Assembly (NCBI GenBank): GCA_009859145.1 | Contig: VRVR01000043.1 | Coordinates: 184,392 to 248,391 of the forward strand | Reading direction: 5' to 3' | Length of the DNA stretch: 64,000 nt | Source of the DNA: Andalucia godoyi And28 | Lineage: Eukaryota > Protista > Jakobida | In this document: in pieces, positions 12,324-38,333 of the stretch | Numbering within the stretch: position 1 is the stretch's first letter | Layout: each line of letters begins with the position of its first letter | The notes under the pieces: model-generated | The model's database searches: none | What the model was told of the DNA's origin: nothing | What the model saw: only the letters and a program-made list of their open reading frames with translations | Position numbers and translations under genes: made by a program

Positions 12324-15300
12324 TTATTCGGGATTCAATGGCTTCCGGCGATGCATGATGATCTTCCTCAATGTTGTAAAGATCATCGCTGCAACAGTAA
12401 TCAGACCCACCAGCACATTGACACACACGGCTCCCGCTTGCGCGATCGAAATAATGTAGATGGTCGTCTCCATCTGTGCCGAGGTTCGGCCTAGATAGGC
12501 CACTGGGAATGTCGCCATGAGCGTTCCAAGGTCAAAAATCGAGTTGAAGAAGAAGAGATACTTATCAGTGGCATCGTGAAAAGGCTTCTTCACGGCAGCG
12601 AGCCCTATGCGCAAGAAGTCAACAAGACAGACGAGAGACAGCTGGAGAACAGGGTCGATGGCACAATAGTCACCGACGACCACAATGCAGGCATCCAGGA
12701 GTGTGCACAAGATCATCCATGCATCGAACCACAATGCATGCGACGCATACGGCTCAAAATACAGCGCGGTGAAGGAAACCCGTTTTTGACACTGCTCTGC
12801 CGTCGTTGTCGTTACATCGCTGCTGGATTTGGCGGCCTGCATCCGATGCCAGACAGGCATGGCAATCAAGAAGCCAATCAGCGCTGCAGCAAGGCACACC
12901 AAGCTCAAAAACGACTGAAATACGGCAGACGTGTTGAACAGCAGTTGCACAAGTCCAGTGACAAAGAGTGGAAAGAGAACAGCGGTCAGCATGCTCAGTG
13001 TGATCATGTACAGTAGTCGGTACATGAACCCCAGCACAAGTGCTCTTCGTCGCGAGCCCTCCGATGATGTCTTGTTGCTGCCATCGGGAGGAGCAGCAGT
13101 AGCGGTGGTAGTAGCAGCAGCAGTTGTCGTTGTTGCGGTTGGGGTATTACCGTGTTCACTCTTGGGCATGCTCCCCATCGCACAGTCGTCTCGCACAATG
13201 AACGATGATTCATATGACATCGTGGAAGAAAGCGATGTCGGCTCGTCAAATCGGAGCCTGTCTATGATGTCTCCATTTCCATCACGACCACTAGTGTGAT
13301 CAGTGTCGTCCGTCAGCTCACAGACTGCATATGGATTATCATGAAATGTGACCCGCGAGCGCTCTTTGAGAAACCCCCGCTTTGCAAAAAGCCTTCCTTT
13401 CTGCGTCTGAGCGTTTGCAATCTCTTCCAGCACCGCAGATAGCCGTTTCATGTCAGCTGGAGAAATGCCAGAGCTCGTTCGAGATCGTGGGGGTTGAGTT
13501 TGGGGTTGAGTCTGAGTTTGGGATTGAGATTGAGAGTCTATGGAGCCCGAGTCGGCGCTGCCCTGATTCAGAGGAGAAAGCCTCGGAGTGCATCCACCTT
13601 GTCGAGCGACGCTAGGGGACGCAGGTGGAAATTGTGTGGCAAAGAGCTGAGATGGAGACTGAAGATAAGCGCCTGGAAGCTTCGACGACGCACCATCAAG
13701 GATCATCGGCGGAAGACGGTTTCTCGTACGTACGCCAATGAGCGGGGAGTCCGAGACGTGATCGAAAGACTCCGTCCGCACATCAACCAGTAGTCCTGGG
13801 CGAATCGCGGACGCCTCGCGATGCAGGGTCCGTTGCATTGGCGTCTGATCCTCAAGATCACCTGGTGCATTTTCGACTGGAGTGCTCGATTCGATAGGTG
13901 ATCTGGAGTGCATTAAAGGCGTAACAGAGGTCGACTTTCGCCCGAACGTCGCGCCTAATCGTAAGAAGCTCCTGAGCTTGGTTCGAAGGAACGACTGCCG
14001 GCGAGCGAGTTCTTTCACCAAGAATCCCTGAATGATGCGCATGATGAGAAACAAATTGAAAATAACAAACATCGAGAACATAAACGCAAGGAACAGCGAT
14101 TCAAACGACTCGCTAAAGGTTCCATGCGCGTTCTTCAAGAAGATCTTCAGGCTGGAATCCGTTTCGTAGTCCACTTCCTGTGTTGCATATCCAATTGGAT
14201 CCCCGACGTCTCGGAGGAATCCGATTTGGAAACCAAACAAGATCACGCTGAATCCTTGGACAAACACCTCGATGTACCACAGCGGAAACTCCACTCGCAG
14301 ACATGCAAAACGAACAAGGTTTTGAATTGCGTCCAGGACTTGCAGCGACGAGCCGGATGCAGAGGACGACGCTACGGCTGACGATGCGGCAGCTCCCGAA
14401 ACCGCTTGCGATGCATCTCCGTAGGAATCTCCGCCCACGGGAGGCAGCTTATCCGGGATAGTTGGAGGAGGCGCAGGAAGCGGAGGAGGAGAGGGAGTTC
14501 CCTGCGGAGGATCACAGGACGGTAGCGTCGCATTGTCGTTGTTGCACACATCACACGCTTCTCCCTTGAATCGTGGGTCGCATACACACAGGCCCAGAGG
14601 CGAACAGTAGCCGTGCCCGGAGCACGTCGTATTCGACTGGCAGAATCTTGAACACTGACTCACGCCATCACTGTTGTTCATAGAGGATACTTGTGGAAAC
14701 AGATTAGCCCGACACACGTTGCATTGGCTGCCGGTAAAATTCAAAGAGCACTTGCACGAGCCATTCAGGTTGCAGATCCCGTGACCTGAGCAATTGCTGA
14801 CGGGATCACAGTATACATTGCAAATCCCACTCGGGTAGCGATTTGAAAGACACGCAGTGCAGTTCGACGACCGAGCGGAAGTGGCCGTACCAAAGCCTTC
14901 TGGGCACGCGATGCATGTGAAATCCGTTTCAATTCCATTTGAATACGTGTTCACAGGACACTCAATGCATCTACTCTGGTCGTCACTCGGAGCAGTGCCG
15001 GGTTCGCACAGATGACACTGTGGCAGCGTCTGATTCGATATCGAGCCCAGTCGACATTTTACGCACGACGTCCTGTTCACGTTCGGTTCAAAGCCATCGG
15101 AACAAGAAACGCACCCTCCCACCATGGTCTCATTTCTCACCTTTCCAGATTCGCAAGCAGCACATCCGTCTCCCTGGCTGGAAATCTCCGTTCCAGCAGG
15201 GCATTGCAGACACAGACCTTTGAGATTCAAGTCCGAGCCGTTGTAGTAGTACGAATGTTCTGCACAGGGCACACAAAACGACTGGTTCAACGACGGTTCA

Positions 15301-18300
15301 AATCCAAATGAGCAGAACGTACAGTTGAATTGCGTTGATGCATTTGAATAAGTGTTGGTCGAGCAGCGAACGCACGAACCATTCGGCGCATGTCCAAAGC
15401 CGGAGTTGCACAAAACAGCAGCAGCAGGAACACTGCAATTCGAAGCACTACAGTTTTGCAGCGCCTCCGTTGCACTGGTAATGTTGCACGCACTACGATC
15501 TTCAATGCTTGACCAACCATCGGGGCAACGAGCACACAAGAATCCAGTGGAGGTATTCGAATAGAATCCTTGCGCGCACGCCATGCATCGAGATTGGTTG
15601 GCGGACGGCTGCTGTCCAGGTCCGCAGACACTGCAAATGAACGACGTAGAAGAGTTCGAATACGACCCGGCTGGGCAGGACACGCAGTCTGCTCGCTCCA
15701 TATTTGGTTCCGTACCAGAAGCGCAAGGAGCACATGACCCGTTCGACTGTGTGTGGCCAAGAGCTGAAAACCTCCCAAGGGGGCATGCTACGCACGATGT
15801 TGAGTACAAGGGCATGAATCCTGCTGGACAAAACGAACAAATGGGCACTGTTTCATTGGAAAACATGTTATCAGAACAAGAAACGCAAGCATCGTTCACG
15901 AGTTCTTTGCCAGCAGGACACCGGCTGCAAAGGATTGACGACAAGTTGAAGAATTCATGAGCACCGCAAACAACGGGAACACAGCGGGCACGATCTTCCG
16001 TGGCCAGGCTTCCGGGTTCACAAACGGCGCACACGTATCGGGATGACGCATTTGAGAATGAATTACCATCACATCTTTCGCACACGGATCTATCTGCCGA
16101 CGACTCGTGTCCATCTGGACAAGAAATGCAAAGGCCATTTGTGGATGAATTGGAGTACGATTCTCGCCCACAGAGAACACAAGCACTGTTGTCAGGCATA
16201 GGTTGGTGCCCCGTCGGACACTGAAGGCAAGAAAACGACGTGGTCGAATTGGAGTACATATTCGATGCACACGCGATGCAAGAACTTTGATTCTCGGAGG
16301 GCTCATATCCAGCAGAGCAGTAGTCGCAAACACCATTTGCAGAATCGTTAGAAAACATGCCTCTTGGACAACGTATGCAGTATGACCTGTCCAATTCGGG
16401 ATAAAGGCCCGGTGGACATCCCAAACAGACGAAACTGGTCGACGCATTGGAGTACATGTTGAGTGGGCAGACGGCACACGATGTGCGGTCGTCGCTCGGC
16501 TGGTTCCCCGGAGGGCATGCTGTGCAGACACCAGACGTTGATGCATTGGAGTACATGTTGAGTGGGCAGACGGCACACGATGTGCGGTCGTCGCTCGGCT
16601 GGTTCCCCGGAGGGCATGCTGCGCAGACACCAGACGTTGATGCGTTGGAGTACATGTTGAGTGGGCACACGGCACACGATGTGCGGTCGTCGCTCGGCTG
16701 GTTCCCTGGAGGGCATGCTGCGCAGACACCAGACGTTGATGCGTTGGAGTACATGTTGAGTGGGCACACGGCACACGATGTGCGGTCGTCGCTCGGCTGG
16801 TTCCCCGGAGGGCATGCTGTGCAGACACCAGACGTTGATGCGTTGGAGTACAGTGGTGAGTGGGCACACGGCACACGATGTGCGGTCGTCGCTCGGCTGG
16901 TTCCCCGGAGGGCATGCTGTGCAGACACCAGACGTTGATGCGTTGGAGTACATGTTGAGTGGGCACACGGCACACGATGTGCGGTCGTCGCTCGGCTGGT
17001 TCCCCGGAGGGCATGCTGCGCAGACACCAGACGTTGATGCATTGGAGTACATGTTGAGTGGGCACACGGCACACGATGTGCGGTCGTCGCTCGGCTGGTT
17101 CCCCGGAGGGCATGCCGTGCAAATAAAACTGGTAGATATATTCGAGAATAAATTGCTTGGGCACGGTTCGCAGAATTGCTGACTGGAGCTAGGCTGAAAG
17201 CCAGAGTCGCACAATGCGCATCGATTCATTGTGGACGAATTGGAGAATTGATTGGACGGACATGAGACGCAAGAGGATGCTCCAGCGGAGGGCTCTAAAC
17301 CATCTTCACAGGTCATGCAAATGCCGCTGCTAAGGACAGAATTGGAAAAACGTCCAGAGGGACAAGTCGAGCACGAAGATCGGTCTGCAGTAGGCTCTGA
17401 GCCGTTGACGCAGTATGTACAGACAAAGCCAGTGGAAGCATTGGAGTACTTGCCCAGTGCGCATTGCAAGCATGCTTCGACGGGAAAGAAAGAGACGGTT
17501 GACCCGGACGGACAGTCGTTGCTGCAGTCTCCTGTTGGATACCTGGCCAAACTGCACAGCGAGCAGTCGTTTGCTCCAGAGTGATTTGGATCGCACACAC
17601 ATTGTCCTGAGGCATTGCAAACACCGTGCGAGGAGCAGCTAATCTGTGCATCGCAGAACACATCGCATGATGCGCCATAGTAGTGATTCGAACACTGGGA
17701 GCAGTTCGCTCCCGCATATCGAGCTGGGCACGTAACCGAGACGACTTTGGTGTCGATGCTGACACCTGTAGGAAACCATTGGATTTGCGACCCCGATACG
17801 GCACGAGCAGACAGCGATGCCGTTCCTTGGCTGAGCCCCAATACCGGCACACTAGCAACCTTGTTTGTATTACTGATTGTCACAGATGGCACCTGAAACG
17901 TCGCCACTGTTGAATTCGACGATGCAAGCGAGAGAACAACCGTGCACGGAGCGAACTCGACAGAGCACGGAGACCGATACAGGGATATTTCGACAGTGTA
18001 TACAGATGCCTGGCCAGAAAGAGAGAGCACTCCTGCATTCACCGTCATGCTGATGATGTTTGTGACTGTGAGTTGGAGCACAGGTCGCAGCGACGCAGAT
18101 GCCAGCGGACTCCAGATAGACGCTGTGGTACTGCTCGCCGAGTGTATCCTCAATCCAAAATTGCGATTCGCAGATACAGTCCAGAACATTGCGGACGGCG
18201 TAATGTCCACAGTGATTGGAATGTTTGCAGTAGGAGACCCCGGAAACGCAGGAAGATTTCCCGGCAAAGCAGTGGCGGAAGGCTGGTTTGACCACGTTAT

Positions 18301-18681
18301 GCTTGACGAAGTCCAGCTCGATGTTACGTTGTACAACGTAAACGGCCCACCGCTGTTGTTTTCAAACGTAAAGATGAGCGATGCCGCCACGATGTACGAC
18401 GAGCTTGCAACACACTCAAACACATTTCGTACGCGGAAAACACTCCGAAGCTCGCTTATCAGCAGCGCACTGTCTCGCGCCTGCATCCTCGTCGTAATCG
18501 TGCTGCTCGACAGCAGCCCGTCGTCCACCTGCGCAAAGTCCATCGCAGATTGATCCAGCGGGAACTGGACCGTCGTCGTCGACTGAGCTCTTACGCAGTC
18601 ATGCATCAGCACCAGCAGTAGTACAGTGCACACAACACCGCAGCACCCAGTGCGGCTGTTCCGCTTCATTATCGCCACCAT
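12324..18681 (-). CDS. Large Cys-rich cell-surface protein (~2118 aa once corrected): signal peptide, DNRLRE/CBM96-like N-terminal domain, laminin/EGF-like and GCC2/GCC3-like CxxC repeats, multi-pass TRP/GPCR-like C-terminal membrane region; one +1 frameshift at ~16853
   Basis: ORFs 16348-18711 and 12324-17072 overlap within the 99-bp tandem array and encode the same repeat in different frames. First ATGs are at 18681 and 18669, followed by a hydrophobic signal (VVCTVLLLVLMHDCVRA). The C-terminal region has several TM segments with LYFEPY..WF and KKPF motifs. Confidence 0.85.
16447..17122 (-). repeat. Tandem array of ~7 near-identical 99-bp units encoding C(T/A)ACPPGNQPSDDRTSCAVCPLNMYSNASTSGV
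   Basis: Unit starts (ttggagtaca) at 16447, 16546, 16645, 16744, 16843, 16943 and 17042. All spacings are 99 except one of 100. Confidence 0.95.
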
Positions 18682-19426
18682 TATTCCATGGCCTTCGACT
18701 TTCTCGTTCACTTTTTTTCACTTCTTTTCCTTCTTCTTCCTCTTCTTTAGTGGATGAACGTGGTTTTTGGAGTCTGCGGGTTGTGCAACCCCGGGGTTCC
18801 CGAGTCCAGTCTGTTCTCAACTAGAAAGAATGAGGACCCAACAGTCAACACCTAACAGCGAATGCCGCGTCTGACTGCATCTCCACACCCACTGTGCCCG
18901 TGCAGTCGCTCACCAACAACACGTCCGACGATGCAGACCTGGTTTCCCTCGCTTACGACGCTCGAAGCATTCCGTCAGCACTTTGCCTGGACGTCGGTGG
19001 ACAAGCGATGCGACGGACTGACGACTATGTTTTGCAAAGTTTCCTCATTTCAGCATTCTTGTTTCAGCAGCAACCTCCGCTTTGCTCGGACGCACACTTG
19101 AAAAAGCACCTTACGGTAGGAATGACAACGGAGGAATGACAAATGACAACGGAAGAATGACAAATTGATGGAGGAGTGCTTTGTATTCTGCAATAGCATT
19201 TTGAAAAAACCCTGGGCGCACTTCGGGATAACTAACCCCCTGCTGCTGCAAATCAAACCAATGCAATGCACACTGGAGCGACCATGGACTTTTCAAGCGG
19301 TTTTCCCCCTCCATTTTCAATTATACGGATTCTTGGTACAATTCAACACTTATTATTATTATTAGAGCGTCGAATTCTGATTTGCTGTTATTATTATTAT
19401 TTAAATTTAGATTTGATTGTGGAATA

Positions 19427-20890
19427 ATGAGCTTGACGCGCGCAATCCGATCTGTTCGCGCATCGCGGCTGTCTTCGCTGTCCAGACGACCGGCGCCTTC
19501 ATTCTTGCACGGCACCAATGCCGTGATTTCCGATTCTCGTTCGTTTTCCACATTTCCATGTTTTCGCTCATTTCCGTTTTTGCAGGCGTTTTCAAACGTC
19601 GTTCCGTTCCTGATGGCAGACATCGGCGAAGGAATCACGGAAGTGGAGGTTTTGCAGTGGTATGTGAAAGAAGGAGACAAGATCTCGCAGTTTGATCGCG
19701 TGTGTGAGGTGCAGTCCGACAAGGCAACAGTGGAAATCACGTCGCGATACGACGGAGTTGTTTCTAAATTGCATTATAAAAAGGGGGATCTTGCGAAAGT
19801 CGGAAAGCCGCTGATTGATGTACAGGTCGAAGGGGCCGTGTCCTCGGAGCCATCTGCGTTTGATAGCAAGCCGGGGTCGTCCGCTCCAGCGTCGACAGCT
19901 CCAGGAGCGGGAATGCAGCAGCAGGAGGAGGAGGTGGCCGCAGAGAAGGGAAAGAAGGGTGAGATTGCCGGTGTTGGGAAGGCACTTGCAACTCCTGCAG
20001 TTCGTCGAGTTGCACGCGAGAAGGGCATTGATCTGAGCTCGATTCGTGGATCCGGACCGAATGGACGGGTTTTAGTAGAAGATTTAGAGTCGGCATCATC
20101 ATCATCATCATCATCATCATCGCCGGCGACGGCGGTGGAAAGCGGCAATGGTGCATTGTCGAGTGCGTTTGCAGCGTCGGCAGATGTAGTGATTCCAGTC
20201 CGTGGAATCACACGAACGATGATCAAGACGATGGAGTCGTCGCTTTCGATTCCTCATCTTGGATACTCGGACGAGATTGTCATGGACAAGTTGATTTCGG
20301 TCCGTTCTCAATTGAAAGATGCATGCCTGGAGCGAGGCGTGAAGATTACATACATGCCGTTCTTCATCAAGGCTTGCTCACTGGCCCTCTCCAAGTATCC
20401 GATTCTGAATTCGTCATTGACTGGATCGACAGAAGGCGAGCGAGTGATTGTGCAAAAGGCAGCCCACAATATTGGAATTGCAATGGACACACCCTCGGGA
20501 CTTCTGGTCCCCAACATCAAGAACTGCGAGTCAAAGTCCATCTTTGAGATCGCTCGGGAACTGAACGATCTGCAGGCGCTTGCCAAGGCCGGAAAACTGT
20601 CGTCGGCGTACTTAACCGGAGGGTCGTTTTCCATCTCCAACATTGGTGCAATTGGCGGCACGTATGCCCGCCCCGTGATTGTTCCGCCCGAGGTCGGCAT
20701 TGGCGCCATCGGCAAGATTCAGACACTGCCGCGCTTTGATGCGACCGGAAACATCGTCAAGGCTAACATTCTCAATATTTCATGGTCCGCCGACCACAGA
20801 ATCGTCGACGGCGCCACAATCGCAAAATTCTCAAACGCAGTCATTGGATTCATTGAAAACCCCGAAACCCTCCTCGTCGACCTCAAGTAA
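19427..20890 (+). CDS. DBT: Lipoamide acyltransferase E2 of branched-chain 2-oxoacid dehydrogenase, mitochondrial
   Basis: Lipoyl domain (ADIGEGITEVEVLQWYVKEGD...CEVQSDKATVEITSRYDG), E3-binding ATPAVRRVARE and catalytic SADHRIVDGA. Arg/Ser-rich presequence from ATG 19427; the listed 19382 start is non-ATG. Confidence 0.95.
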   Translation: MSLTRAIRSVRASRLSSLSRRPAPSFLHGTNAVISDSRSFSTFPCFRSFPFLQAFSNVVPFLMADIGEGITEVEVLQWYVKEGDKISQFDRVCEVQSDKATVEITSRYDGVVSKLHYKKGDLAKVGKPLIDVQVEGAVSSEPSAFDSKPGSSAPASTAPGAGMQQQEEEVAAEKGKKGEIAGVGKALATPAVRRVAREKGIDLSSIRGSGPNGRVLVEDLESASSSSSSSSSPATAVESGNGALSSAFAASADVVIPVRGITRTMIKTMESSLSIPHLGYSDEIVMDKLISVRSQLKDACLERGVKITYMPFFIKACSLALSKYPILNSSLTGSTEGERVIVQKAAHNIGIAMDTPSGLLVPNIKNCESKSIFEIARELNDLQALAKAGKLSSAYLTGGSFSISNIGAIGGTYARPVIVPPEVGIGAIGKIQTLPRFDATGNIVKANILNISWSADHRIVDGATIAKFSNAVIGFIENPETLLVDLK

Positions 20891-21252: not shown

Positions 21253-21258
<6 letters not shown>

Positions 21259-24192
21259 TCGCACTGCGTGCTGAATCTGCCCGCGCTCAGTGCAAAGTAC
21301 GTGTGGCTTCCGACATGTACGCTTCCTACAGCAGGCAGCGGGGCGTTCTTGTTTGAAGCTCGGGCGCATAATGACATTCATGTAGCGCTACACTATTCGT
21401 GCTCGGAATTGGCGTCGCAGCGAGACTCTCGGTATCCGGATGCTGCGGCAGCGTACGAATTCCTGTTTGGCGGATACACAAACACAAAGAGTTTGATTCG
21501 GCGATTTGGAAAGCAGGTCGCGCTGACGTCGTTCAAGCTGACGACAGGCGCGGCGATTCCGCAGGGCATATTCACACGATTTTGGATCTCAATCAGCATC
21601 GACGGTGTGCTGGCGATGGGTTATGGATCCGTCGGCGAAAATGTTATCCTTCGATGGCAGGATGCAGAGCCGGTCACGACGGTCATGTATGTCGGACTTT
21701 CTTCGTGGGACTCGCCAGTCCAGTACCGCAACTTCTACACGACACCGTCATCGATTGTGACGGGGTTGCATTCCGGCGCAGGACCTCGAAGAACAGCGGT
21801 GACTCGATCCGCTTCCAATGAACCCTATTCACCAGCATCCGCATTCACATCAATTGCACCTGGTCAGTCCAGCAGCAACAGCAGCGGCAGCAGTAGTAGT
21901 AGCACCAGCAGCAACAGCTTCTCCTCCTCCTTGTCAGGGAACTCAATATCGAGCTTGCAAGCGACTGCACTATACGAGTCTTCGCTGGCGGACTCGCTGT
22001 TGACGCCTTCCTCGGGTGCTGTAACAGGACCGTTGGCATCGTCTGCTTCCTCTCCAGGAGCAATTACCAACACCTCAAACTCGAGGAGGTTTTCAACACC
22101 ACGGTCAGAATCCGTGTCATCGGCGGGGGGTGCTGTGTCAACAGAGGTTATCGTCGACGCGTCGTTCGTCAGTGTCGTGTCGAATGATTGGAGGTACAAT
22201 CTCTTCTCGCTGCAGCAATCTGGAATCTTTTGCGATGTCATTTTGAACTTTGCGGACGGCTCGCAGTCGGCTGTGCATTCTTTCGTGCTCGCCGCTGCGT
22301 CGCCGCTGTTCGCTCTGAAATTCCGACAGCTGCGCCAGTCGAACCCGCAGCATCTTGTGCAAGAAATGAACTGTTTCTTGTCGGACGCGGACCTGGACTG
22401 CGATGTTACGGGGTACGAATGGGAGGTGCTGATGGTGGCAATCTACACGGGACTCTTGTACGGGATCCAGTCTTTGGATGTTGATCGGTATATTGCAATA
22501 TCGAGAGGTCTGCAGTTGGCAAACATTTGCGACGCCCTCGTCGCGCAGCGGTCCAATCTGATGAGTCAGCCGTTTGCGCATTCACAGTCTAGCTTGGCTT
22601 GCGAGCAGACGTTGCTGCGGTTTCGCGAAGTGCTGCTCGATGCTACGACACCGGACGACGTCGAGGTGTACTACGCAGAACATCTGGAAGGATCCTTTGG
22701 GGATTGCCAGCTTATTTGTGACAACATGCGGTTTGCATGTCACCGCGCCGCTCTTGGTGCGCATTCCAATTTTTTCTTTCGCATGTTCTCTGGCGGATTT
22801 CACGAGTGCATTACTCGAGAGTGCGATCTGACGGACATGATTTCTGCTGATGTACTCCGGCAGGTCCTGGAGTACTGCTACTCGGGTGTTCTGCCTCCGT
22901 CGATTGCTTGCGACTCGCGGAAGCTGGTCGATCTGATGACGGCCTCTTCGGAATTTATGCTTACGATTCTGAAGCGCGAAGTGGAACGTCGCCTCTGCGA
23001 AGTCGTGCAGTCTCCAGGCTTTGCCGCCGACTTGGTCTCCTTGGCGGATGCGTGGGACTGTCCCGTATTGCGCGATCGCTGCATTGATGTTCTGCAAGTG
23101 CAGTTTTGCTCACTTCCGACGGACAGCGTGCAGAACTTGTCGATAAGCGTAGTGGAGGAACTGTTGCAGCGTGAAGATCTACATGCCGACATAAGCCAAA
23201 ACGACATTTTCCTGTTTTCTCTCAACTGGCTTGCGTCGTCCGTCAGCAATCTTCCCACACAGGATGTGGATGTAGTCAAGAAGGGTTACGAAACTCGTGT
23301 GTTTCCATCGCTCCGAATTCACCTCCTGTCTCGCGACTTTCTTGATGGGCTGATTTCTGATACCCGCTATGCCGCTTTGCTGCCACCCGTGTCGTTTGCG
23401 CGACTGCAGCGCGCAGCCTCGGACCTTGCAGAATCGATTGCAGCCTCTGCTGCAGCCTCTGCATCGGCCTCTGCCTCTGCATCTTCGTCTCAACTCGCAT
23501 TCTCACTGCATCCTCTCGCAAAGAGCCTTTCAGAGATGCTTCCGTCCAATGTGAAGATCCCACGTCTCTCCGTTGCTCTGGCCTTCGTTCGGCCTGGGGA
23601 TGACAATGGCGTCTTCTACTACATCGGATCGAAGGGTCATACACACCCTTGGACGAATCCGCATTCGAACGGGGACGTCGTTGTATCGTGTTCGTCGCCC
23701 AGGAATCGTTTCTCACACTCTGAATTTGTTGTGGATCGACGCACTCATTCGACTGTTTTCTTTACCTCGCCTACGCACCAGCCGTGGGTCGCAGTGGACT
23801 TGGGAGAGAAGTATCGTCTCCTGTGCACGCGATACACGCTTCGCCACGACTCCTCGGCCAGCAACTTCTTGCGGTCTTGGGATTTCCAAGCGTCGGATGA
23901 CGGACAGAGCTGGAGCTGCCTTCGCACTCACCGAAACGACACGAGCATTTCCCATTCGCGTGCCTGTATTTCTTTCTTGGTTTCCACAAGCTCCCAAGGG
24001 CATCCGTTGCCACAGGACGCGCAGCAACTGCGTGAATCGACGTGCCGTCCGTACCGGCACTTTCGAGTGATCATGCGAGATTGCTCCAGCTCCGGCTCCG
24101 ATCAAATGGTCCTCAGCAATCTCGAGTTGTACGGCTTCCTCGTGCTCCGTACGTTGACCCAAGCAGCTCCAACTGCGCCTCCTGCGCTTTGA
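21253..24192 (+). CDS. Farnesoic-acid-O-methyltransferase-like domain + 2x BTB/POZ + BACK + F5/8 type C (discoidin) protein, resembling Arabidopsis At2g30600
   Basis: N-terminal FEARAHNDIHVAL...YVGLSSWDSPVQYRN. Two BTB motifs (CDVILNF...HSFVLAAASPLF; CHRAALGAHSNFFFRMFSGGF). C-terminal DDNGVFYYIGS..WTNP and YTLRHDSSASNFLRSWDFQASDDGQSW...YRHFRVI...ELYG. Confidence 0.88.
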
Positions 24193-32340: not shown

Positions 32341-35300
32341 ATGGAGTCGTCAGATCGTCGGTCGTGGCGAGTTCTTCCTTCGCCGGATACTGCGCGGCCT
32401 GGAATCTATCCATTGCCAGAGCCGCCGCTGCTTGCTCGGAGACCGACAAAGATTGAAGCTGTGAAGAATCCGCTTTTCCCGCCTGCCTTTCCGCTGAATG
32501 AGCCGCAGCCACAGAGCCCGTCAAGAAGAGGCGGAGGAACGGGCGGAGGAACTGGTGCCGGTGGTGCACTGGATCCGCTGTCTTCCACTGCGTTTGGGGA
32601 CTCGCGGAACCTGGACCGCTTCTTGAATGAGGAGCGCCGCAAGAGCAGGATCGTGTACTGGGTCATGGGAATCCACATTCTGATCCTGTGGGCCGTGGTT
32701 GCGCTGCTCTTGTACAACACGACGAAGCTGCAGCAGCTGGCTGGAGAGTCAAATTATGATGTGGCCAAGGTGTCTGCGAACTCGGTGAGCGCAAATTCGC
32801 TGCTGGTCTCTTCGAATGGGCCCCAGCAGGTCTCTGTGGAGTCGAAAAACGCAGCAGCTTCACTAGCGGTAAAGTCACACGCGGGAACGGCATCCCTTGT
32901 GCTGGAGGACAGCACGTCGCCCGTGTCCATTGCGTCGGCGAACGGCGTGCTGGTTGTCCAATCGGGAACCCAGCCCGCAATGAAGGTCTCTGCCTCAGGA
33001 AGCAGTTTCAATGGTAGCGTTTCAACGTCGTCGCTGATGGCGAACACCATTAATCTTTCTGCAGGCGAAGCCACGACATTTTCGTTCTCAAGCGCACGTC
33101 ATTCATTCGATCGCATTGCAGCAAGGATCGCAGTCGACACGCAGCATTCTCTGTCGTTCAGCCCGACCGAAGGCTTCTCTTTGAGCAAGGGCAGCGATGC
33201 CATGCTGCAAATCCGCGACAGCATAGTGTTGCGATCTGCGTTGGGCGCGGTTGTGAACATCAACAATGTGCGATTTGACAATCAGACAATCAGCATGCCT
33301 GGTCTGCTGCTGTCAAACAGCGGCATCGCGGCGAGCAATGGATCCTTTGGAATTTCAGTGTCATCTGGAGATGTCACTATTTTCGCCAGTCAGGGTAGGA
33401 TTTTAGCACAAAGCGATCTTGTCGTTGCAGCGGGCGGACACGTATTCGCTTCGAATGTGCATTCTTTGCCGTCGGAAGACCTTCGGATTCACTCACACAC
33501 AGGGCTCATGACCATCAATACTTCAAGGCTTGTTATTGGTCCTGCAGATGCGGTCAACGTGTCTGTTACAGGAAAAGTTCAGGTTGCCGCTGGAGATGGC
33601 ACGCCTGGCTCCTCGGCAACAGGGTTCGGGGCCGGAGGAGATGGATCCAAGGGAGGGGACATAACGCTTCGTGCTGGTACGGGGGGTGCTGGAGGTTCCT
33701 CTGGAGGCTTTTCTGGTGCGGGGGGAGACGGAGGTGCGGGCGGAAATGTCTTCCTCGTACCGGGCACAGGGGGCGCTGTTGCGGCTGTGGACGTCCTCCA
33801 TGCTTCTGCACCCGGCATCGACGGAGAGGTCATCGTATCTCCGTCCTGTGTTTTTTCTGGGACAGGCTGCCCGTCGAGCTCTGCCTCTCGATTGCGAATC
33901 TCCACTCCCACTCCAACCTTGTCATTTGGAGATAAGGGGTCGTCATGGGTCTTCCTCGCCAACAGTTCCACCAGTGGATCCTCATCGTTTCACATGTTTT
34001 CAGACGTCTTTGGATGCAATGTGATGAGTTGGGGCTCGTCTTTGCGGAATGGCCTGTCGAACTCCCGCCCTTCCGTGGAAGTAGAACAGGGGATTTTCCG
34101 CGTTCATCAAGGTGGCCTGGATCACGCAACTATTTCTGTTTCTCCACTGTTCACGAGTTTTACGCTGCTGTCGCAATCCAATAATGCATCTATTTCGTTC
34201 GCGGATCGGTTTTTCATCTCTGCAGATGGAGATTCGTTGAATATATACTCTTCACAAAACACCAGCAGGAGATTGGAGTTCCTTTCTCCGCGACAAGAGC
34301 TGGTTTCAACAGGACTCCCGTTGTCATTCGTCGAGTCTGCTAATGGCTCGCTGCAGCAGGTCATAATCAGTTCCCGTACCGTACTCGCCGCGAATGGGTC
34401 GACAGTGCAGGTTGGCGAGGCGGTTCTGTCATTCTCAAATGGTTTGAACATCCGTTCCAAAGGATCACAAATTCAGTTCAGGGATTCTGCGGATGTAATT
34501 TCTATATCTGCAAACAGGTATCTTACAGTAGACTCAGTAGAGCCTACAAGATTCCTCGCCGGTGTTGCGTTGTGCACCTCTCCTCCAAACGTCGATCCGA
34601 CGTGCACCAATTCCATATTGCTGAACGGTTCGTCGGCTTCCATTTCGTCTTCCTCGCTGTCTCTGGATTTCGCATCTTCCAGCATTACTGCCGACAGTCT
34701 TCATGGTCGAAGCATTTTGTTCCTCGACTCTTCCAGGGGTGTTTTCGTTGATTCGACCAGACCACTCTCCGGAGTCACAAGTTCAGCTGCTTCTGGCGTG
34801 TTTTCTGATTTGCAGATCTTCTTCTTTAATTCGACAGTGCTCAGTCAGAATGCTTCCATTTACATCAGTCCTGCCGATTCCTTGATCATTTCCGGGTCTC
34901 GAGTGATGAAGATAGGCGCTGTTGTCCTATCCGGACAGACGAATGCGCTGACCGGCCCAGGAATGGTCCTGGATTTTTCTGGAAACTCCTTGAAGTCCAC
35001 TTCGGGCAGCGGCCTATCCATCGTGTCCCACAGCTCCTTGCTTTTGTCATCGCTTGCTGCGGACGTTCTCGTGTCTGCCCCCGAGGGCCGACGAATGTTC
35101 CTTCAAGCCGGGGCTCGTGTCGTTGATGGTTCGACCATGGTTTTGAATTTCACGGCGGCGTCCGTGCGATCTTTGGATGTTCTGAATCTGAATCCGTATT
35201 CGAATGTTGTTGTTCAAGGCTCCTCTGGAGCAACGGTTGTCGTACTGGGAGATGCTTCGATCGCAAGCAACATCCGAATGACGCCCACGTCTGTTACGGG

Positions 35301-38115
35301 CTCCTCGCTACAGATCAAGTTTGCCGACTCGGTCGGCGTACCGGGAACCACAGGCTCCATCAAAGACACTGCGCGGGATCTTCTTCTGAGTTCTGTGCAC
35401 AATCGCGTCATTCTCGCAACAGGGACGCAGGGAGTTATGGTGGAGGTGTCTCCGGAGGCTTTCACAGGAAGCGGCGGAACTGCGTCGCCCCTGATGTCCA
35501 CTTCGGTATCCTCATTTTTCTTGGACTTTGGACGCCGAACAGTTGGAACTTCTGTGGGCACAGAGAGTCTCGTGTTGCGTGGAGGCAATGACGTGCAGAT
35601 TACGGGATCTAACCGGATTGTCTTCGGTTCCGTTGTGACTGCCCAATCCCTCACGGTTTGTGGGTCATGCGGCGCCTCGTTCGATCAGTCTTTTATTTCC
35701 GGATTGCAGCTGAAGATCGACTTTGTTGGATCGTCGGTGGAGTCTCAGACGGGAGATCTCATCGTGTCTTCTCCTGCAGCTGGAGGCGTGATCTCTCTGC
35801 GATCCAATTCTGGCATTCGCTTGAAGTCGTCAACGGGGTCCACTGGTCTGAACATGCGAGACGAGAATTCCAACCTTGAGATTGATTTCGCGGCTCGGCA
35901 GCTGCGCTCCATGACTGGAGAATTGATCATCAAGGGCGAAGCATCCACTCGCATCATTTCTGGAGACGCTGGACTGTTCCTCGTTCCATTGGGAACCGGG
36001 CCAGCGAAACCGCTGAAGATTACCGCGGGCGCAGCAGATAGCACGCTGTATTACCAACGCCCTGTTGCGTCCTGTGGAAGCGGGATCTTCCCCACGCACT
36101 TTACCGGGCAAAATGCAGCTGGTGGATGTGCGTCTGCCGGGGGCTCTGTCACTGTTGCTGCTGGATCGGCTTTCCAGGGGGCTGGCGGCGATGTCTCGGT
36201 CATCGCTGGCGACAACACGGCAGCGCCTGGAACGGCCGGGAATGTGTATCTCATTAGTGGGCAAAACATCGGAGGAAACATTGGAGACACGCTTGTACAG
36301 ACGCGCCAGATGAATGTGTATTTCAGAGGTGCAGAGTGGAAAGTCCTCAGCGTCGGTACGAGTACTGGAGATGGCGATTTCGTCTACGTTGGTAATGCGA
36401 ACTCGACGTATACGTTCGACACAGATGCGTATACGGATGCGATTGTGGCCCGTTCTCGGATGCAGAATCTCATTGCGGCAGAGACCATCACGATTTCGAA
36501 CGAGATTCCCGTATCCCGCAACATTCTGACTTCCATTCAGATTGGACATCCCACGGACATGAACATTTACACGCAGCTGATTTATGCGCGGGCATTGCGG
36601 TATCGCTTCGTGGATCACAACATGTACACTGGCTTTTTTATGGATCCTGTCAGTATCCTCCTGAACCGTTCCCACACGATTGACCTGTATACCACCAACT
36701 TGACGGCGAGGTCGGAAGGGTTCCTGGATTTTCAAACGGGGACGCAAGGAGTGCGCATGGGGCCGATCGACACGCTGCGCACTCTGATGGTGGAAGTTGG
36801 ATCTGTGAAGGCAGCTGTTGAGATCTACCGCCCGCAGTCAAATGGGGTTCCTGCGACGTACACAAAGCTGATTGGCCAGCATGCATGTTCATTGTGTGGT
36901 GCTGGTGGAGCGGTGTCGATCTATGGAGGTTCTGCCCACAGTGCAAGCAATGCCGATGTGGGTGGTGCGGTGAGTCTGTACGCCGGTGACGGACTCTCTG
37001 GCAGTTCTGGTGGCGCGATTTCGATCGTTGCCGGGTCGGCTGCGGGTGCTGGGTCTGGTGGTTCGCTGACCATCCAAGCGGGTACTGGTGCTGCGACGGC
37101 TGCGTACGGCGGTATTGATGTTCGCACTCGGTGGTTTGACGTTCGAAAGGTCTCTGAAACGTATTCGCTGTTGCACATTGACACGCACACGGACGACACG
37201 AATGGCGACTATGTGAATGTCGGAAATTGGGACCTTGGAATCCTGTACTCGGATGCACGGTACACGAACAAGGTGCAAATTCGAGCGACCGAATTTAATT
37301 CCGAGGTCGGGTCGAAGATGAGCGTGGTTCCAGCACAGACGTCGTCTTCGCAGTTTCTTGTTGGTTCTGCATCGCTCTTTTTCAACACGATTGAACTGCG
37401 CTCCACGCTGACGACGATCTACGACAATGCGAATGTGGCGGCACTGACGATTACGACGACGACCGCAACTCTATTTCGCTCCACAACGCTGGATCTGAAG
37501 ACGTCTGGGGGTGCTGGAACGACGATTAATGTTGGCCAGAGTGGCACACTGACAGAAAATGTGAACCTTCGGGGAACGAACGTCAAGATCTGGAATGCAG
37601 GAACGGCGACCGTGACTGTGCAGCTGAACGGCGACATGCTCATCGATGTTGGTGCCTCGTATGACCTCAAGATCGTCACGGGCGACTTGGATGTCCAGGC
37701 TGGGAAAGTCAAAGAGTATGGCAACAGCATCATGCCTGCCGGCTCCATCATCATGTATCGTGGCTCGTCATGCCCGCCCGGGTTCACTGCCGTTTCGGAG
37801 GCCCGCGATCGTGTTCTTGTCGGTCTTCCAAGCTCGGGATTCAGCGCCGGAGCCTCCATTGGCCCTGGCACAGGCGTCTCCACATCGACCTTCCAGCTAA
37901 CCACAACGGCCGGCGCAGCCACCGTCCCCCTTCCCGGCCACGGCCATGGAACCTCCAACTTCTGCTACTCTGCCTCTGGATGCAGTGTCTCGAGCGCATA
38001 TACGGGAAGCACCAGCGCCTCCACGCTTACCGTGAACACCTTCAACACCGACTCGAGAAACATCAACGGCATCCTTCCCGGCGTCTACTTCCTCGTCTGC
38101 GAAAAGACCCTGTAA
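32341..38115 (+). CDS. Uncharacterised 1924-aa type II membrane protein with beta-rich/Gly-rich fibre-like ectodomain and C-terminal phage tail-collar-like domain
   Basis: Intact ORF. Pro-rich N-terminal ~100 aa, one TM helix (IVYWVMGIHILILWAVVALLLY), ~1800 aa of Ser/Gly/Thr-rich beta-type sequence with GGxVxIxAG repeats. C-terminus MPAGSIIMYRGSSCPPGF...RVLVG...LPGHGH...LPGVYFLVCEK. Confidence 0.88.
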   Translation: MESSDRRSWRVLPSPDTARPGIYPLPEPPLLARRPTKIEAVKNPLFPPAFPLNEPQPQSPSRRGGGTGGGTGAGGALDPLSSTAFGDSRNLDRFLNEERRKSRIVYWVMGIHILILWAVVALLLYNTTKLQQLAGESNYDVAKVSANSVSANSLLVSSNGPQQVSVESKNAAASLAVKSHAGTASLVLEDSTSPVSIASANGVLVVQSGTQPAMKVSASGSSFNGSVSTSSLMANTINLSAGEATTFSFSSARHSFDRIAARIAVDTQHSLSFSPTEGFSLSKGSDAMLQIRDSIVLRSALGAVVNINNVRFDNQTISMPGLLLSNSGIAASNGSFGISVSSGDVTIFASQGRILAQSDLVVAAGGHVFASNVHSLPSEDLRIHSHTGLMTINTSRLVIGPADAVNVSVTGKVQVAAGDGTPGSSATGFGAGGDGSKGGDITLRAGTGGAGGSSGGFSGAGGDGGAGGNVFLVPGTGGAVAAVDVLHASAPGIDGEVIVSPSCVFSGTGCPSSSASRLRISTPTPTLSFGDKGSSWVFLANSSTSGSSSFHMFSDVFGCNVMSWGSSLRNGLSNSRPSVEVEQGIFRVHQGGLDHATISVSPLFTSFTLLSQSNNASISFADRFFISADGDSLNIYSSQNTSRRLEFLSPRQELVSTGLPLSFVESANGSLQQVIISSRTVLAANGSTVQVGEAVLSFSNGLNIRSKGSQIQFRDSADVISISANRYLTVDSVEPTRFLAGVALCTSPPNVDPTCTNSILLNGSSASISSSSLSLDFASSSITADSLHGRSILFLDSSRGVFVDSTRPLSGVTSSAASGVFSDLQIFFFNSTVLSQNASIYISPADSLIISGSRVMKIGAVVLSGQTNALTGPGMVLDFSGNSLKSTSGSGLSIVSHSSLLLSSLAADVLVSAPEGRRMFLQAGARVVDGSTMVLNFTAASVRSLDVLNLNPYSNVVVQGSSGATVVVLGDASIASNIRMTPTSVTGSSLQIKFADSVGVPGTTGSIKDTARDLLLSSVHNRVILATGTQGVMVEVSPEAFTGSGGTASPLMSTSVSSFFLDFGRRTVGTSVGTESLVLRGGNDVQITGSNRIVFGSVVTAQSLTVCGSCGASFDQSFISGLQLKIDFVGSSVESQTGDLIVSSPAAGGVISLRSNSGIRLKSSTGSTGLNMRDENSNLEIDFAARQLRSMTGELIIKGEASTRIISGDAGLFLVPLGTGPAKPLKITAGAADSTLYYQRPVASCGSGIFPTHFTGQNAAGGCASAGGSVTVAAGSAFQGAGGDVSVIAGDNTAAPGTAGNVYLISGQNIGGNIGDTLVQTRQMNVYFRGAEWKVLSVGTSTGDGDFVYVGNANSTYTFDTDAYTDAIVARSRMQNLIAAETITISNEIPVSRNILTSIQIGHPTDMNIYTQLIYARALRYRFVDHNMYTGFFMDPVSILLNRSHTIDLYTTNLTARSEGFLDFQTGTQGVRMGPIDTLRTLMVEVGSVKAAVEIYRPQSNGVPATYTKLIGQHACSLCGAGGAVSIYGGSAHSASNADVGGAVSLYAGDGLSGSSGGAISIVAGSAAGAGSGGSLTIQAGTGAATAAYGGIDVRTRWFDVRKVSETYSLLHIDTHTDDTNGDYVNVGNWDLGILYSDARYTNKVQIRATEFNSEVGSKMSVVPAQTSSSQFLVGSASLFFNTIELRSTLTTIYDNANVAALTITTTTATLFRSTTLDLKTSGGAGTTINVGQSGTLTENVNLRGTNVKIWNAGTATVTVQLNGDMLIDVGASYDLKIVTGDLDVQAGKVKEYGNSIMPAGSIIMYRGSSCPPGFTAVSEARDRVLVGLPSSGFSAGASIGPGTGVSTSTFQLTTTAGAATVPLPGHGHGTSNFCYSASGCSVSSAYTGSTSASTLTVNTFNTDSRNINGILPGVYFLVCEKTL

Positions 38116-38333
38116 CCCAAACTGTGCCAACTGTAAAAAGTATATATGTATAAAATTAGCAAAAAAACAATAATAATAAAATGTCGCTTGTCTCACGTGA
38201 TGCCACACCTCCCCACCCCGTCCCCCCTGCCACAGGTCCGTCTTGCTTTTGCTTTTGCCTTCTTAAGTGCAGCAATAAAGACAAACCAAAAAGACATCAA
38301 CAAAAAGAAAACGTTGTCGTTCAGTCCGGAAGA

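Follow-up and report, generated by a model that had tools for sequence, protein, structure and literature searches.

A predicted membrane-anchored protein family of the jakobid Andalucia godoyi with a C-terminal domain related to phage tail-fibre tips

Phage fibres attach to the virus particle through their N-terminus, while their C-terminal domain nucleates trimer folding and contacts the receptor, and in T4 gp12-type tips an HxH motif supplies metal ligands. The T4 proteins gp10, gp11 and gp12 can be superimposed and go back to a single primordial fold; the receptor-binding domain of gp12 has been described as a 'knitted trimeric metal-binding fold' (PMC3004832). Collar-type domains are known sporadically in eukaryotes, as in a 191-amino-acid secreted protein of Plasmodiophora (PMC9530463). 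Here we analyse a gene of the jakobid Andalucia godoyi, the fibre gene, at positions 32341–38115 of a 64-kb stretch of contig VRVR01000043.1 (positions 184,392–248,391 of the forward strand; hereafter the window, to which all coordinates refer). Profile comparison identifies the C-terminal tip of its product as a homolog, at the superfamily level and through intermediate sequences, of the Gp10_C/Collar tips of phage tail fibres, and a literature search returned neither an account of this family nor one of a eukaryotic membrane-anchored fibre that ends in a tip of this kind. With moderate confidence, we read the fibre protein as a member of a membrane-anchored family with a beta-rich stalk and a phage-type knob, acquired once, that would assemble as a homotrimer, hold a metal site and bind ligands as an adhesin or prey-capture tip.

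The C-terminal tip and its link to phage tail-fibre tips

The open reading frame (ORF) and the elements of its C-terminal end are as follows.

32341–38115, + strand: complete coding sequence without introns, ATG start, 1924 amino acids plus stop codon; nuclear, annotated merely as a hypothetical protein
37663–38112, + strand: neck (GDLDVQAGKVKEYGNSIMPAGS) and C-terminal tip domain, amino acids 1775–1924; by profile comparison a short Cys-bearing member of the Gp10_C/Collar superfamily
37771–37773, + strand: Cys1811 of the CPxG[WFY] motif, present in 152 of 154 domains; predicted disulfide partner Cys1920
37939–37947, + strand: HxH motif H1867-G-H1869; candidate metal site on the three-fold axis
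38098–38100, + strand: Cys1920 of the LVCxK terminal strand, present in 152 of 154 domains

The ORF has exactly the extent and ATG start given in an earlier note on this DNA, which was made from the sequence alone, and its 1924-residue product equals the public protein P0001 in length and sequence. A phmmer search with the 150-residue tail returned 103 relatives at E<1e-3 among 1.84 billion representative proteins, typically aligned end to end, so that the C-terminal pattern picked out in the earlier note recurs far beyond chance. The domain lies within three residues of the C-terminus in 132 of 153 proteins and has the signature P.G[AS][IV]..F...CP.G[WYF].E...GR..VG...H.H...P[YG]...L.C.K, of which the fibre protein keeps the near-invariant residues P1799, C1811-P-x-G, R1824, H1867-x-H1869, P1913, C1920 and K1922. 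The two histidines of the HxH motif, to which the earlier note had also drawn attention, are conserved in the family (129 and 125 of 154 domains) and fall, in the alignment, on the P-x-H-x-H of Collar/Gp10_C proteins.

Existing domain models reach the tip through its relatives. The Pfam Collar model (PF07484) matches neither the full protein nor its last 250 amino acids even at E≤1, and none of 40 relatives at E≤0.01; Gp10_C (PF21939, gathering score 27 bits) likewise does not match the fibre protein itself. Relatives that exceed the Gp10_C gathering score include P0077 (27.8 bits), P0136 (30.9), P0158 (36.0) and P0159 (34.2), and P0077 is a direct phmmer match of the fibre protein (E=2.7e-4 in 1.84 billion proteins). 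A search with the tip profile recovers ~15 proteins annotated with PF21939, one with PF07484 and one 'microcystin-dependent protein', and on re-scanning the Gp10_C matches fall within the region of the tip profile, seven of them above the gathering score. At the level of motifs, the first half of the Collar pattern, G-x-I-x-x-[FWY]-x-G...P-x-G-W, is present in the fibre protein (PAGSIIMYRGSSCPPGF), the CDG...PDLRGRF segment is absent, and the remaining R-D-R-V-L-V-G aligns to GRFIIG. A canonical Collar protein, P0160 (...GKVREGGFALVPAGSIIMWTGTIAPNGWALCDGDNGTPDLRGRF...), aligns to positions 6–137 of the family profile, and the subfamily of the fibre protein therefore appears to be a shortened version that lacks the CDG...TPDL insert.

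The superfamily assignment is carried by a comparison of two separately built profiles. In hhalign, a profile built from five eukaryotic tips alone (A5) aligned with one built from Pfam-annotated proteins alone (A6) across 125 columns that reach from the neck GKVKE..N...PAGS as far as the terminal LVCEK (probability 98.6%, E=1.2e-15), and A6 in turn matched solved chains named 'Tail fiber protein' (9qgo_A, E=2.3e-9; 9nxk_A, E=1.1e-7) and 'Short tail fiber' (9cuy_c, E=2e-3). On these two results we base the homology of the tip with phage fibre tips, and the tip is best described, as far as sequence profiles can tell, as a short Cys-bearing branch of Gp10_C/Collar that the Pfam, PHROG and NCBIfam models largely miss. 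The headline of the earlier note, a membrane-anchored eukaryotic protein ending like a phage tail fibre, is thus upheld by the alignment of A5 with A6; the collar or fibre match it proposed to look for was found as a profile link to solved tail fibres and not as a direct match to Collar. Structural comparison gives weaker evidence that points the same way in viral models: a Foldseek search of the AlphaFold2 (AF2) tip model against BFVD gave a best match at E=0.016 and probability 0.97, and the top named matches are nearly all collar, microcystin-dependent, tail-fibre or Gp10_C proteins.

Relatives of the tip also bear on its oligomeric state. Several carry the domain directly after a collagen triple helix, and among proteins with multiple copies the number of tips never exceeds three and is exactly three in 11. 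These three-copy proteins come from bacterial metagenome-assembled genomes (MAGs), for example of Chloroflexota (P0006, P0019, P0022, P0027, P0031, P0036, P0056, P0079, P0099, P0102 and P0106), and are probably single-chain pseudo-trimers of a knob that is normally trimeric. Because of the collagen-stalk relatives, the limit of three tandem copies and the trimeric state of the homologous solved fibre domains, we consider it most likely, by analogy, that the fibre protein forms a homotrimer.

Membrane anchor, stalk and gene family

Upstream of the tip, the fibre protein consists of the following parts.

32341–32649, + strand: predicted cytoplasmic N-terminal tail, amino acids 1–103, Pro/Gly-rich, without signal peptide, with the basic cluster RRKSR at its end
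32467–32478, + strand: NPLF motif, amino acids 43–46, in the cytoplasmic tail; candidate sorting or endocytic motif of the NPxF/NPF type
32650–32715, + strand: single transmembrane helix, amino acids ~104–125, called from hydropathy and the family alignment
32716–36060, + strand: proximal and middle stalk, amino acids 126–1240, rich in Ser, Thr, Gly and Val, with 16 of the 19 sequons and conserved close Cys pairs
33598–33780, + strand: first Gly-rich segment, amino acids ~420–480, GAGGDGSKGGDITLRAGTGGAGG..., resembling the Gly-rich heads of modules M1 and M2
36061–36888, + strand: stalk module M1, amino acids 1241–1516, a Gly-rich GGxVSxxAG run and a conserved core at amino acids 1316–1516
36889–37662, + strand: stalk module M2, amino acids 1517–1774, a diverged copy of M1 and, after it, a beta-rich connector

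Kyte–Doolittle hydropathy (19-residue window, threshold 1.6) exceeds the threshold solely for windows starting at amino acids 102–110, consistent with one transmembrane helix. The basic stretch NEERRKSR directly precedes this helix and an N-terminal signal peptide is absent, from which we infer a type II single-pass membrane protein with ~1800 amino acids outside the cell; hydropathy and basic flank thus bear out the helix position and topology proposed in the earlier note. The most abundant residues overall are S, G, A, V, L and T (S 14.7%, G 11.5%, V 8.5%, T 8.2%), and there is very little E (2.2%) or K (1.8%). The earlier note had also stressed many N-x-S/T sequons and a beta-strand-like stretch. 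There are indeed 19 sequons, a count not above the 20.4 expected from composition, and a paralogue of 64% identity retains 13 of them, where 35% would be expected (binomial p=0.003). Conservation extends to five pairs of Cys that lie close together, including 503/510, 745/755 and 1107/1110, and the kept sequons together with these pairs fit an ectodomain that is extracellular, partly glycosylated and disulfide-bonded. The beta character gains indirect support from composition and from two AF2 models, of the tip and, at low confidence, of a stalk module, which contain almost only strands.

Type II topology and a beta-rich ectodomain are features shared with sarcoglycans, and a stretch at amino acids 294–420 gives a weak match to Pfam Sarcoglycan_1 (PF04790; E=0.035, 13.9 bits). 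On this basis the protein could be placed in a sarcoglycan-like eukaryotic family whose resemblance to phage fibres is convergent. We give this explanation a negligible probability: the score is far under the 32.5-bit cut-off of the family hidden Markov model, and the homology of the tip is statistically strong. Sarcoglycan identity was rejected as a candidate, with none of five relatives matching and no sarcoglycan chain found by a profile of the N-terminal ectodomain against the PDB. A best match to a sarcoglycan-like family, which the earlier note had named as evidence that would overturn its view, did not occur, and the weak match is attributed to chance.

A module of ~135–200 amino acids that follows Gly-rich GGxVSxxAG runs is repeated in the distal third of the ectodomain, with two copies in the fibre protein (amino acids ~1241–1516 and ~1517–1774) and up to four in relatives. 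The repeat relation of M1 and M2 is supported by hhalign (89%, E=2e-6 over ~130 amino acids) and is visible solely to profile methods, as BLAST self-comparison found no internal repeats. Among 161 proteins fetched, the module is confined to the eukaryotic family, and no relatives of the ~1650-residue stalk were detectable outside that family; a wider search with a stalk-module profile (A7) saturated without recovering the fibre protein itself and is uninformative on the presence of the stalk elsewhere. A phmmer search of the full protein against the PDB gave only low-complexity matches to Gly linkers, which stem from the Gly-rich segment at amino acids ~420–480. The similarity of prokaryotic proteins starts only at amino acids ~1745–1775, that is, at the neck and tip. 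The stalk thus appears to be lineage-specific, and only neck and tip are shared with prokaryotes and phages by sequence.

Sequence comparison identifies the fibre gene as one of at least five A. godoyi paralogues. A full-length word-indexed search saturated on low complexity and returned one of them, ANDGO_04149 (P0002), the closest relative at 64% identity over the full length, while an exhaustive HMMER search with the last 150 amino acids added ANDGO_02946, ANDGO_07176 and ANDGO_02922. The same search found a 2061-residue protein on Logan contig SRR15116022 (L001, 6623 nt), whose differing base composition (GC 59%) indicates another organism. This sole family member found outside A. godoyi has three to four stalk modules and a tip without HxH, and its contig holds essentially this one gene. 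All six proteins follow one plan of a hydrophilic N-terminal tail, a transmembrane helix, a very long ectodomain and the same C-terminal domain. NPL(x)F occurs in the cytoplasmic tail of four of the six, and within the helix a His, a Trp and a Tyr (IHxxxxW...Y) are invariant in all six (P0002–P0005, P0025 and the fibre protein), a pattern unusual for a simple anchor that suggests helix–helix packing in a trimer or contact with a partner. Identity between the fibre protein and ANDGO_04149 peaks at 80–94% over amino acids 1050–1500, with M1 the best conserved part of the protein, and is lowest (36%) in the C-terminal half of the tip. The ANDGO numbers of the paralogues are non-adjacent, and the genes are on that basis judged to be dispersed.

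Genomic setting and origin of the tip

The fibre gene is a native nuclear gene of A. godoyi, a bacterivorous jakobid. Genes around it encode RRP12, WD40, BTB/F5-8C, SET, Sin1, kinesin, Nipped-B, GST and IQ/LRR proteins, and the product of an ORF at 19424–20890, a branched-chain transacylase E2, agrees in every one of the ~160 residues that Table S1 of the genome paper (PMC7050145) prints for ANDGO_08307, which identifies the window as nuclear DNA of A. godoyi. The A. godoyi genome was described there as ~20 Mb, compact and mostly intron-free, and the window agrees with this description. Neither integrase, capsid or other phage, viral or mobile genes nor tRNAs were found in the 64-kb window. 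Codon usage of the whole fibre gene correlates with that of its neighbours at r=0.91, a better match than any other gene in the window. Given eukaryotic neighbours, no viral genes and matching codon usage, contamination, a prophage and an integrated virus are excluded for practical purposes, and the statement in the earlier note that the gene sits among ordinary eukaryotic genes and is not part of a prophage holds over the full 64 kb.

Codon usage of the tip is the one feature that speaks for bacterial or phage contamination, or a chimeric join, behind the eukaryotic ORF. Over the 150 tip codons (37663–38112), relative synonymous codon usage correlates with the pooled neighbours at r=0.19, below all of 159 size-matched control windows (minimum 0.23), and the GC content at third codon positions (0.73) lies in the top 4%. 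Amino acids 601–750 of the same gene are nearly as deviant (r=0.21), which indicates that the statistic is noisy for sequences of biased composition, and the fusion is common to all paralogues; the deviation of the tip is therefore not decisive, and we treat it as unexplained noise and not as evidence of recent transfer. Further against such an artefact, a single uninterrupted ORF crosses the junction of stalk and tip, eukaryotic genes stand on both flanks, the window matches the published ANDGO_08307, and the same fusion recurs in four other proteins of A. godoyi and in one of another organism, with the tips mutually closest. The artefact is effectively refuted and retains a vanishingly small probability.

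Cys-type tips are widespread in prokaryotes. A pattern scan of one genome per prokaryotic species located 74 loci (L011–L084) in very diverse MAGs, including bacteria of the Elusimicrobia, Patescibacteria/Saccharibacteria, Myxococcota, Bacteriovoracia, Solirubrobacterales and Chloroflexota and DPANN archaea of the Woese-, Pace- and Aenigmatarchaeota. The Cys-type tip is strikingly common in small-celled episymbionts (Patescibacteria/Saccharibacteria, DPANN) and predators (Bacteriovoracia, Myxococcota), all of which attach to other cells. In tailed phages, a pattern scan identified the domain on six IMG/VR contigs; two of these place the tip gene between the major head protein and tail proteins, and another has it four genes after the tape-measure gene, where fibre genes are typically found.

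Every eukaryotic tip finds its best matches among other eukaryotic tips, and on this ground the simplest history would be a single acquisition of neck plus tip from a bacterium or phage, fusion to a eukaryotic stalk and subsequent duplication. Since the similarity to prokaryotes and phages is limited to neck and tip, the tip was probably grafted, and a whole fibre was not domesticated. Of the domesticated phage or bacterial fibre envisaged in the earlier note, the last ~150–180 amino acids are thus shared with phages and prokaryotes, and the remainder, the lineage-specific stalk, is not. The donor might instead have been a giant virus or virophage, of which the gene would be a remnant or domesticated copy, as the best BFVD matches include collar-domain proteins of Terrestrivirus, CroV, Fadolivirus and Orpheovirus. 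We consider this source very unlikely: no viral hallmark gene occurs anywhere in the 64 kb, the sequences that phmmer and BLAST rank nearest come from prokaryotic MAGs and tailed-phage contigs and belong to the Cys-type subfamily, and the paralogues are dispersed as judged by their gene numbers. A single prokaryotic or phage source accordingly remains the origin that we favour.

Three further observations concern the rest of the window. The fibre stop codon is separated by 65 bp from the first ATG of the next ORF (38116–38181), which fits the tight gene packing reported for A. godoyi; that ORF encodes a 936-residue WD40 protein with long Ser-, Gly- and Gln-rich tracts, and its true start may be further downstream. 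On the reverse strand at 12324–18711, two long ORFs overlap in different frames (12324–17072 and 16348–18711); both carry Cys-rich repeats of the Ephrin_rec_like/NCD3G/TNFR type, the upstream ORF also contains a CBM96 carbohydrate-binding module, and together they probably represent one giant Cys-rich surface protein split by an intron or frameshift, which would make it the second large surface protein of the window. The gene at 21253–24192 encodes a 979-residue protein with an unusual mix of Methyltransf_FA (farnesoic acid O-methyltransferase-like), two BTB stretches and F5/8 type C (discoidin).

Proposed function and comparison with known systems

In the model that we propose, the ~100-residue cytoplasmic tail and one transmembrane helix would anchor the N-terminus, and the ~1800-residue extracellular part would form a long, beta-rich, partly N-glycosylated stalk built of lineage-specific repeated modules. 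Three chains would combine into one fibre, nucleated and kept in register by the C-terminal knob, in which the HxH histidines could form a metal site on the three-fold axis and a predicted Cys1811–Cys1920 disulfide would stabilise each subunit. The stalk may have pre-existed or newly evolved in the eukaryote, with the tip fused before the family expanded. A type II anchor would reproduce the polarity of phage fibres, which are anchored by the N-terminus and carry the C-terminal tip at the far end, and this polarity would place the variable loops of the knob at a distance of tens of nanometres from the plasma membrane. There they may bind an external ligand, most likely a surface polysaccharide of bacteria or of the substrate, as an adhesin or prey-capture receptor, and the cytoplasmic NPL(x)F might couple binding to uptake. 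Adhesion to prey or substrate is the most attractive role because A. godoyi eats bacteria and the ancestral tips bind bacterial envelopes, and by this analogy prey capture is plausible.

Conservation within the family can be read in two ways. In favour of a ligand-binding tip, identity between paralogues reaches its minimum (36%) in the C-terminal half of the knob, against 80–94% in the modules. The main rival takes the same figures as a sign that selection acts mainly on the stalk: the protein would be a structural component of a coat or glycocalyx, with the knob a foldon-like trimerisation nucleus, and would form a passive layer that protects or spaces the surface of the cell or flagellum, with no specific ligand. 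A role in registration and trimerisation fits the C-terminal place of the domain in 132 of 153 relatives and its fusions to collagen stalks, and five paralogues could be coat variants. Against a passive coat, loops that vary while their scaffold is conserved usually mark a binding surface, the homologous phage domains sit at the distal, receptor-contacting end (PMC3004832), and the conserved NPL(x)F and invariant polar residues of the transmembrane helix suggest signalling or trafficking. We judge the structural coat unlikely, if still deserving of weight. A more specific version of the adhesin model would make the family phagocytic prey-recognition receptors, in which the captured tip is carried on the protein's own trimeric stalk, the loops have diversified for different envelopes and NPL(x)F and the transmembrane helix couple binding to uptake; we offer this as speculation and think it, taken as a whole, unlikely as well. 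If true, a module with which phages recognise their hosts would have become a feeding receptor of a eukaryote.

Several results count against the trimeric, ligand-binding fibre that we favour. By direct test the tip belongs to neither Pfam Collar nor Gp10_C, and direct scans with Pfam, PHROG and NCBIfam models, of the whole protein as well as of its tail, produced no meaningful match. The AF2 model of the tip monomer reaches a predicted local distance difference test (pLDDT) score of only 68, and the Foldseek search of it against the PDB, one of the checks proposed in the earlier note, returned nothing at E<0.1, let alone anything significant (top hit 6ov6, E=0.67); the BFVD matches all have E>0.01, at template-modelling scores of ~0.3. 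The stalk-module model reached a pLDDT of just 48, and the 'fibre' character of the protein draws on composition and analogy. One family member, P0003, is without HxH. With regard to the phage connection, 50,697 deposited phage genomes searched by tblastn, with the tip and with a bacterial member as queries, yielded no match, and the two bacterial loci inspected are ordinary cellular neighbourhoods outside prophages, where ligand binding by the domain would itself be a conjecture.

To our knowledge, next to nothing is known about the recognition and holding of bacterial prey by free-living heterotrophic flagellates, and jakobids are a key lineage for reconstructing early eukaryotes. The fibre family would offer a concrete, testable candidate for the recognition of prey or substrate. 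It would also be a clean example of domain-level transfer from a prokaryote or phage to a eukaryote that was followed by a new architecture, in which a recognition module evolved in phages was joined to a eukaryotic anchor the right way round and multiplied into a family of genes.

Among described proteins, the T4 gp10/gp11/gp12-type tips (PF21939 and PF07484; 9qgo, 9nxk and 9cuy) are the nearest by homology of the C-terminal domain, as judged by profiles. They share with the jakobid tip the neck GKV[KR]E.G..L[IV]PAG[SA][IV], the P.G[WFY], GR..VG and P.H.H motifs and a terminal hydrophobic strand, and in both cases the domain stands at the extreme C-terminus of an elongated protein anchored by its N-terminus, with a trimer and a metal site presumed. 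By context and N-terminal anatomy, the fibre protein is not a phage tail fibre: its gene lies outside any virion module, with no phage genes in 64 kb, and its N-terminus is a predicted cytoplasmic tail and transmembrane helix where T4-type fibres have a baseplate-binding part. Unlike canonical Collar domains, the jakobid tip is short, lacks CDG...TPDLRGRF and carries two invariant Cys, and no relation of the stalk to known phage fibre shafts can be detected. Prokaryotic collar-type proteins (MdpB-like 'microcystin-dependent protein' and MAG proteins with collagen stalk and tip) have the same Cys-type tip, often after a trimeric collagen stalk, and are probably secreted or surface proteins. These, like the collagen-collar proteins of giant viruses, are small (150–600 amino acids), have a signal peptide or short anchor and lack the jakobid stalk modules.

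The closest functional parallel may lie in animals. Class A scavenger receptors (SR-A, MARCO) are type II trimeric phagocytic receptors whose C-terminal head binds bacterial surfaces. They show no kinship with the fibre protein in sequence or fold and differ from it in having coiled-coil or collagen stalks and scavenger receptor cysteine-rich heads, where the jakobid protein has a lineage-specific stalk and a head probably derived from phage. As an analogy of how the protein might work, both follow the same order of parts: a short cytoplasmic N-terminal tail, one transmembrane helix, a long fibrous stalk that is trimeric in the receptors and probably so in the jakobid protein, and a C-terminal recognition head.

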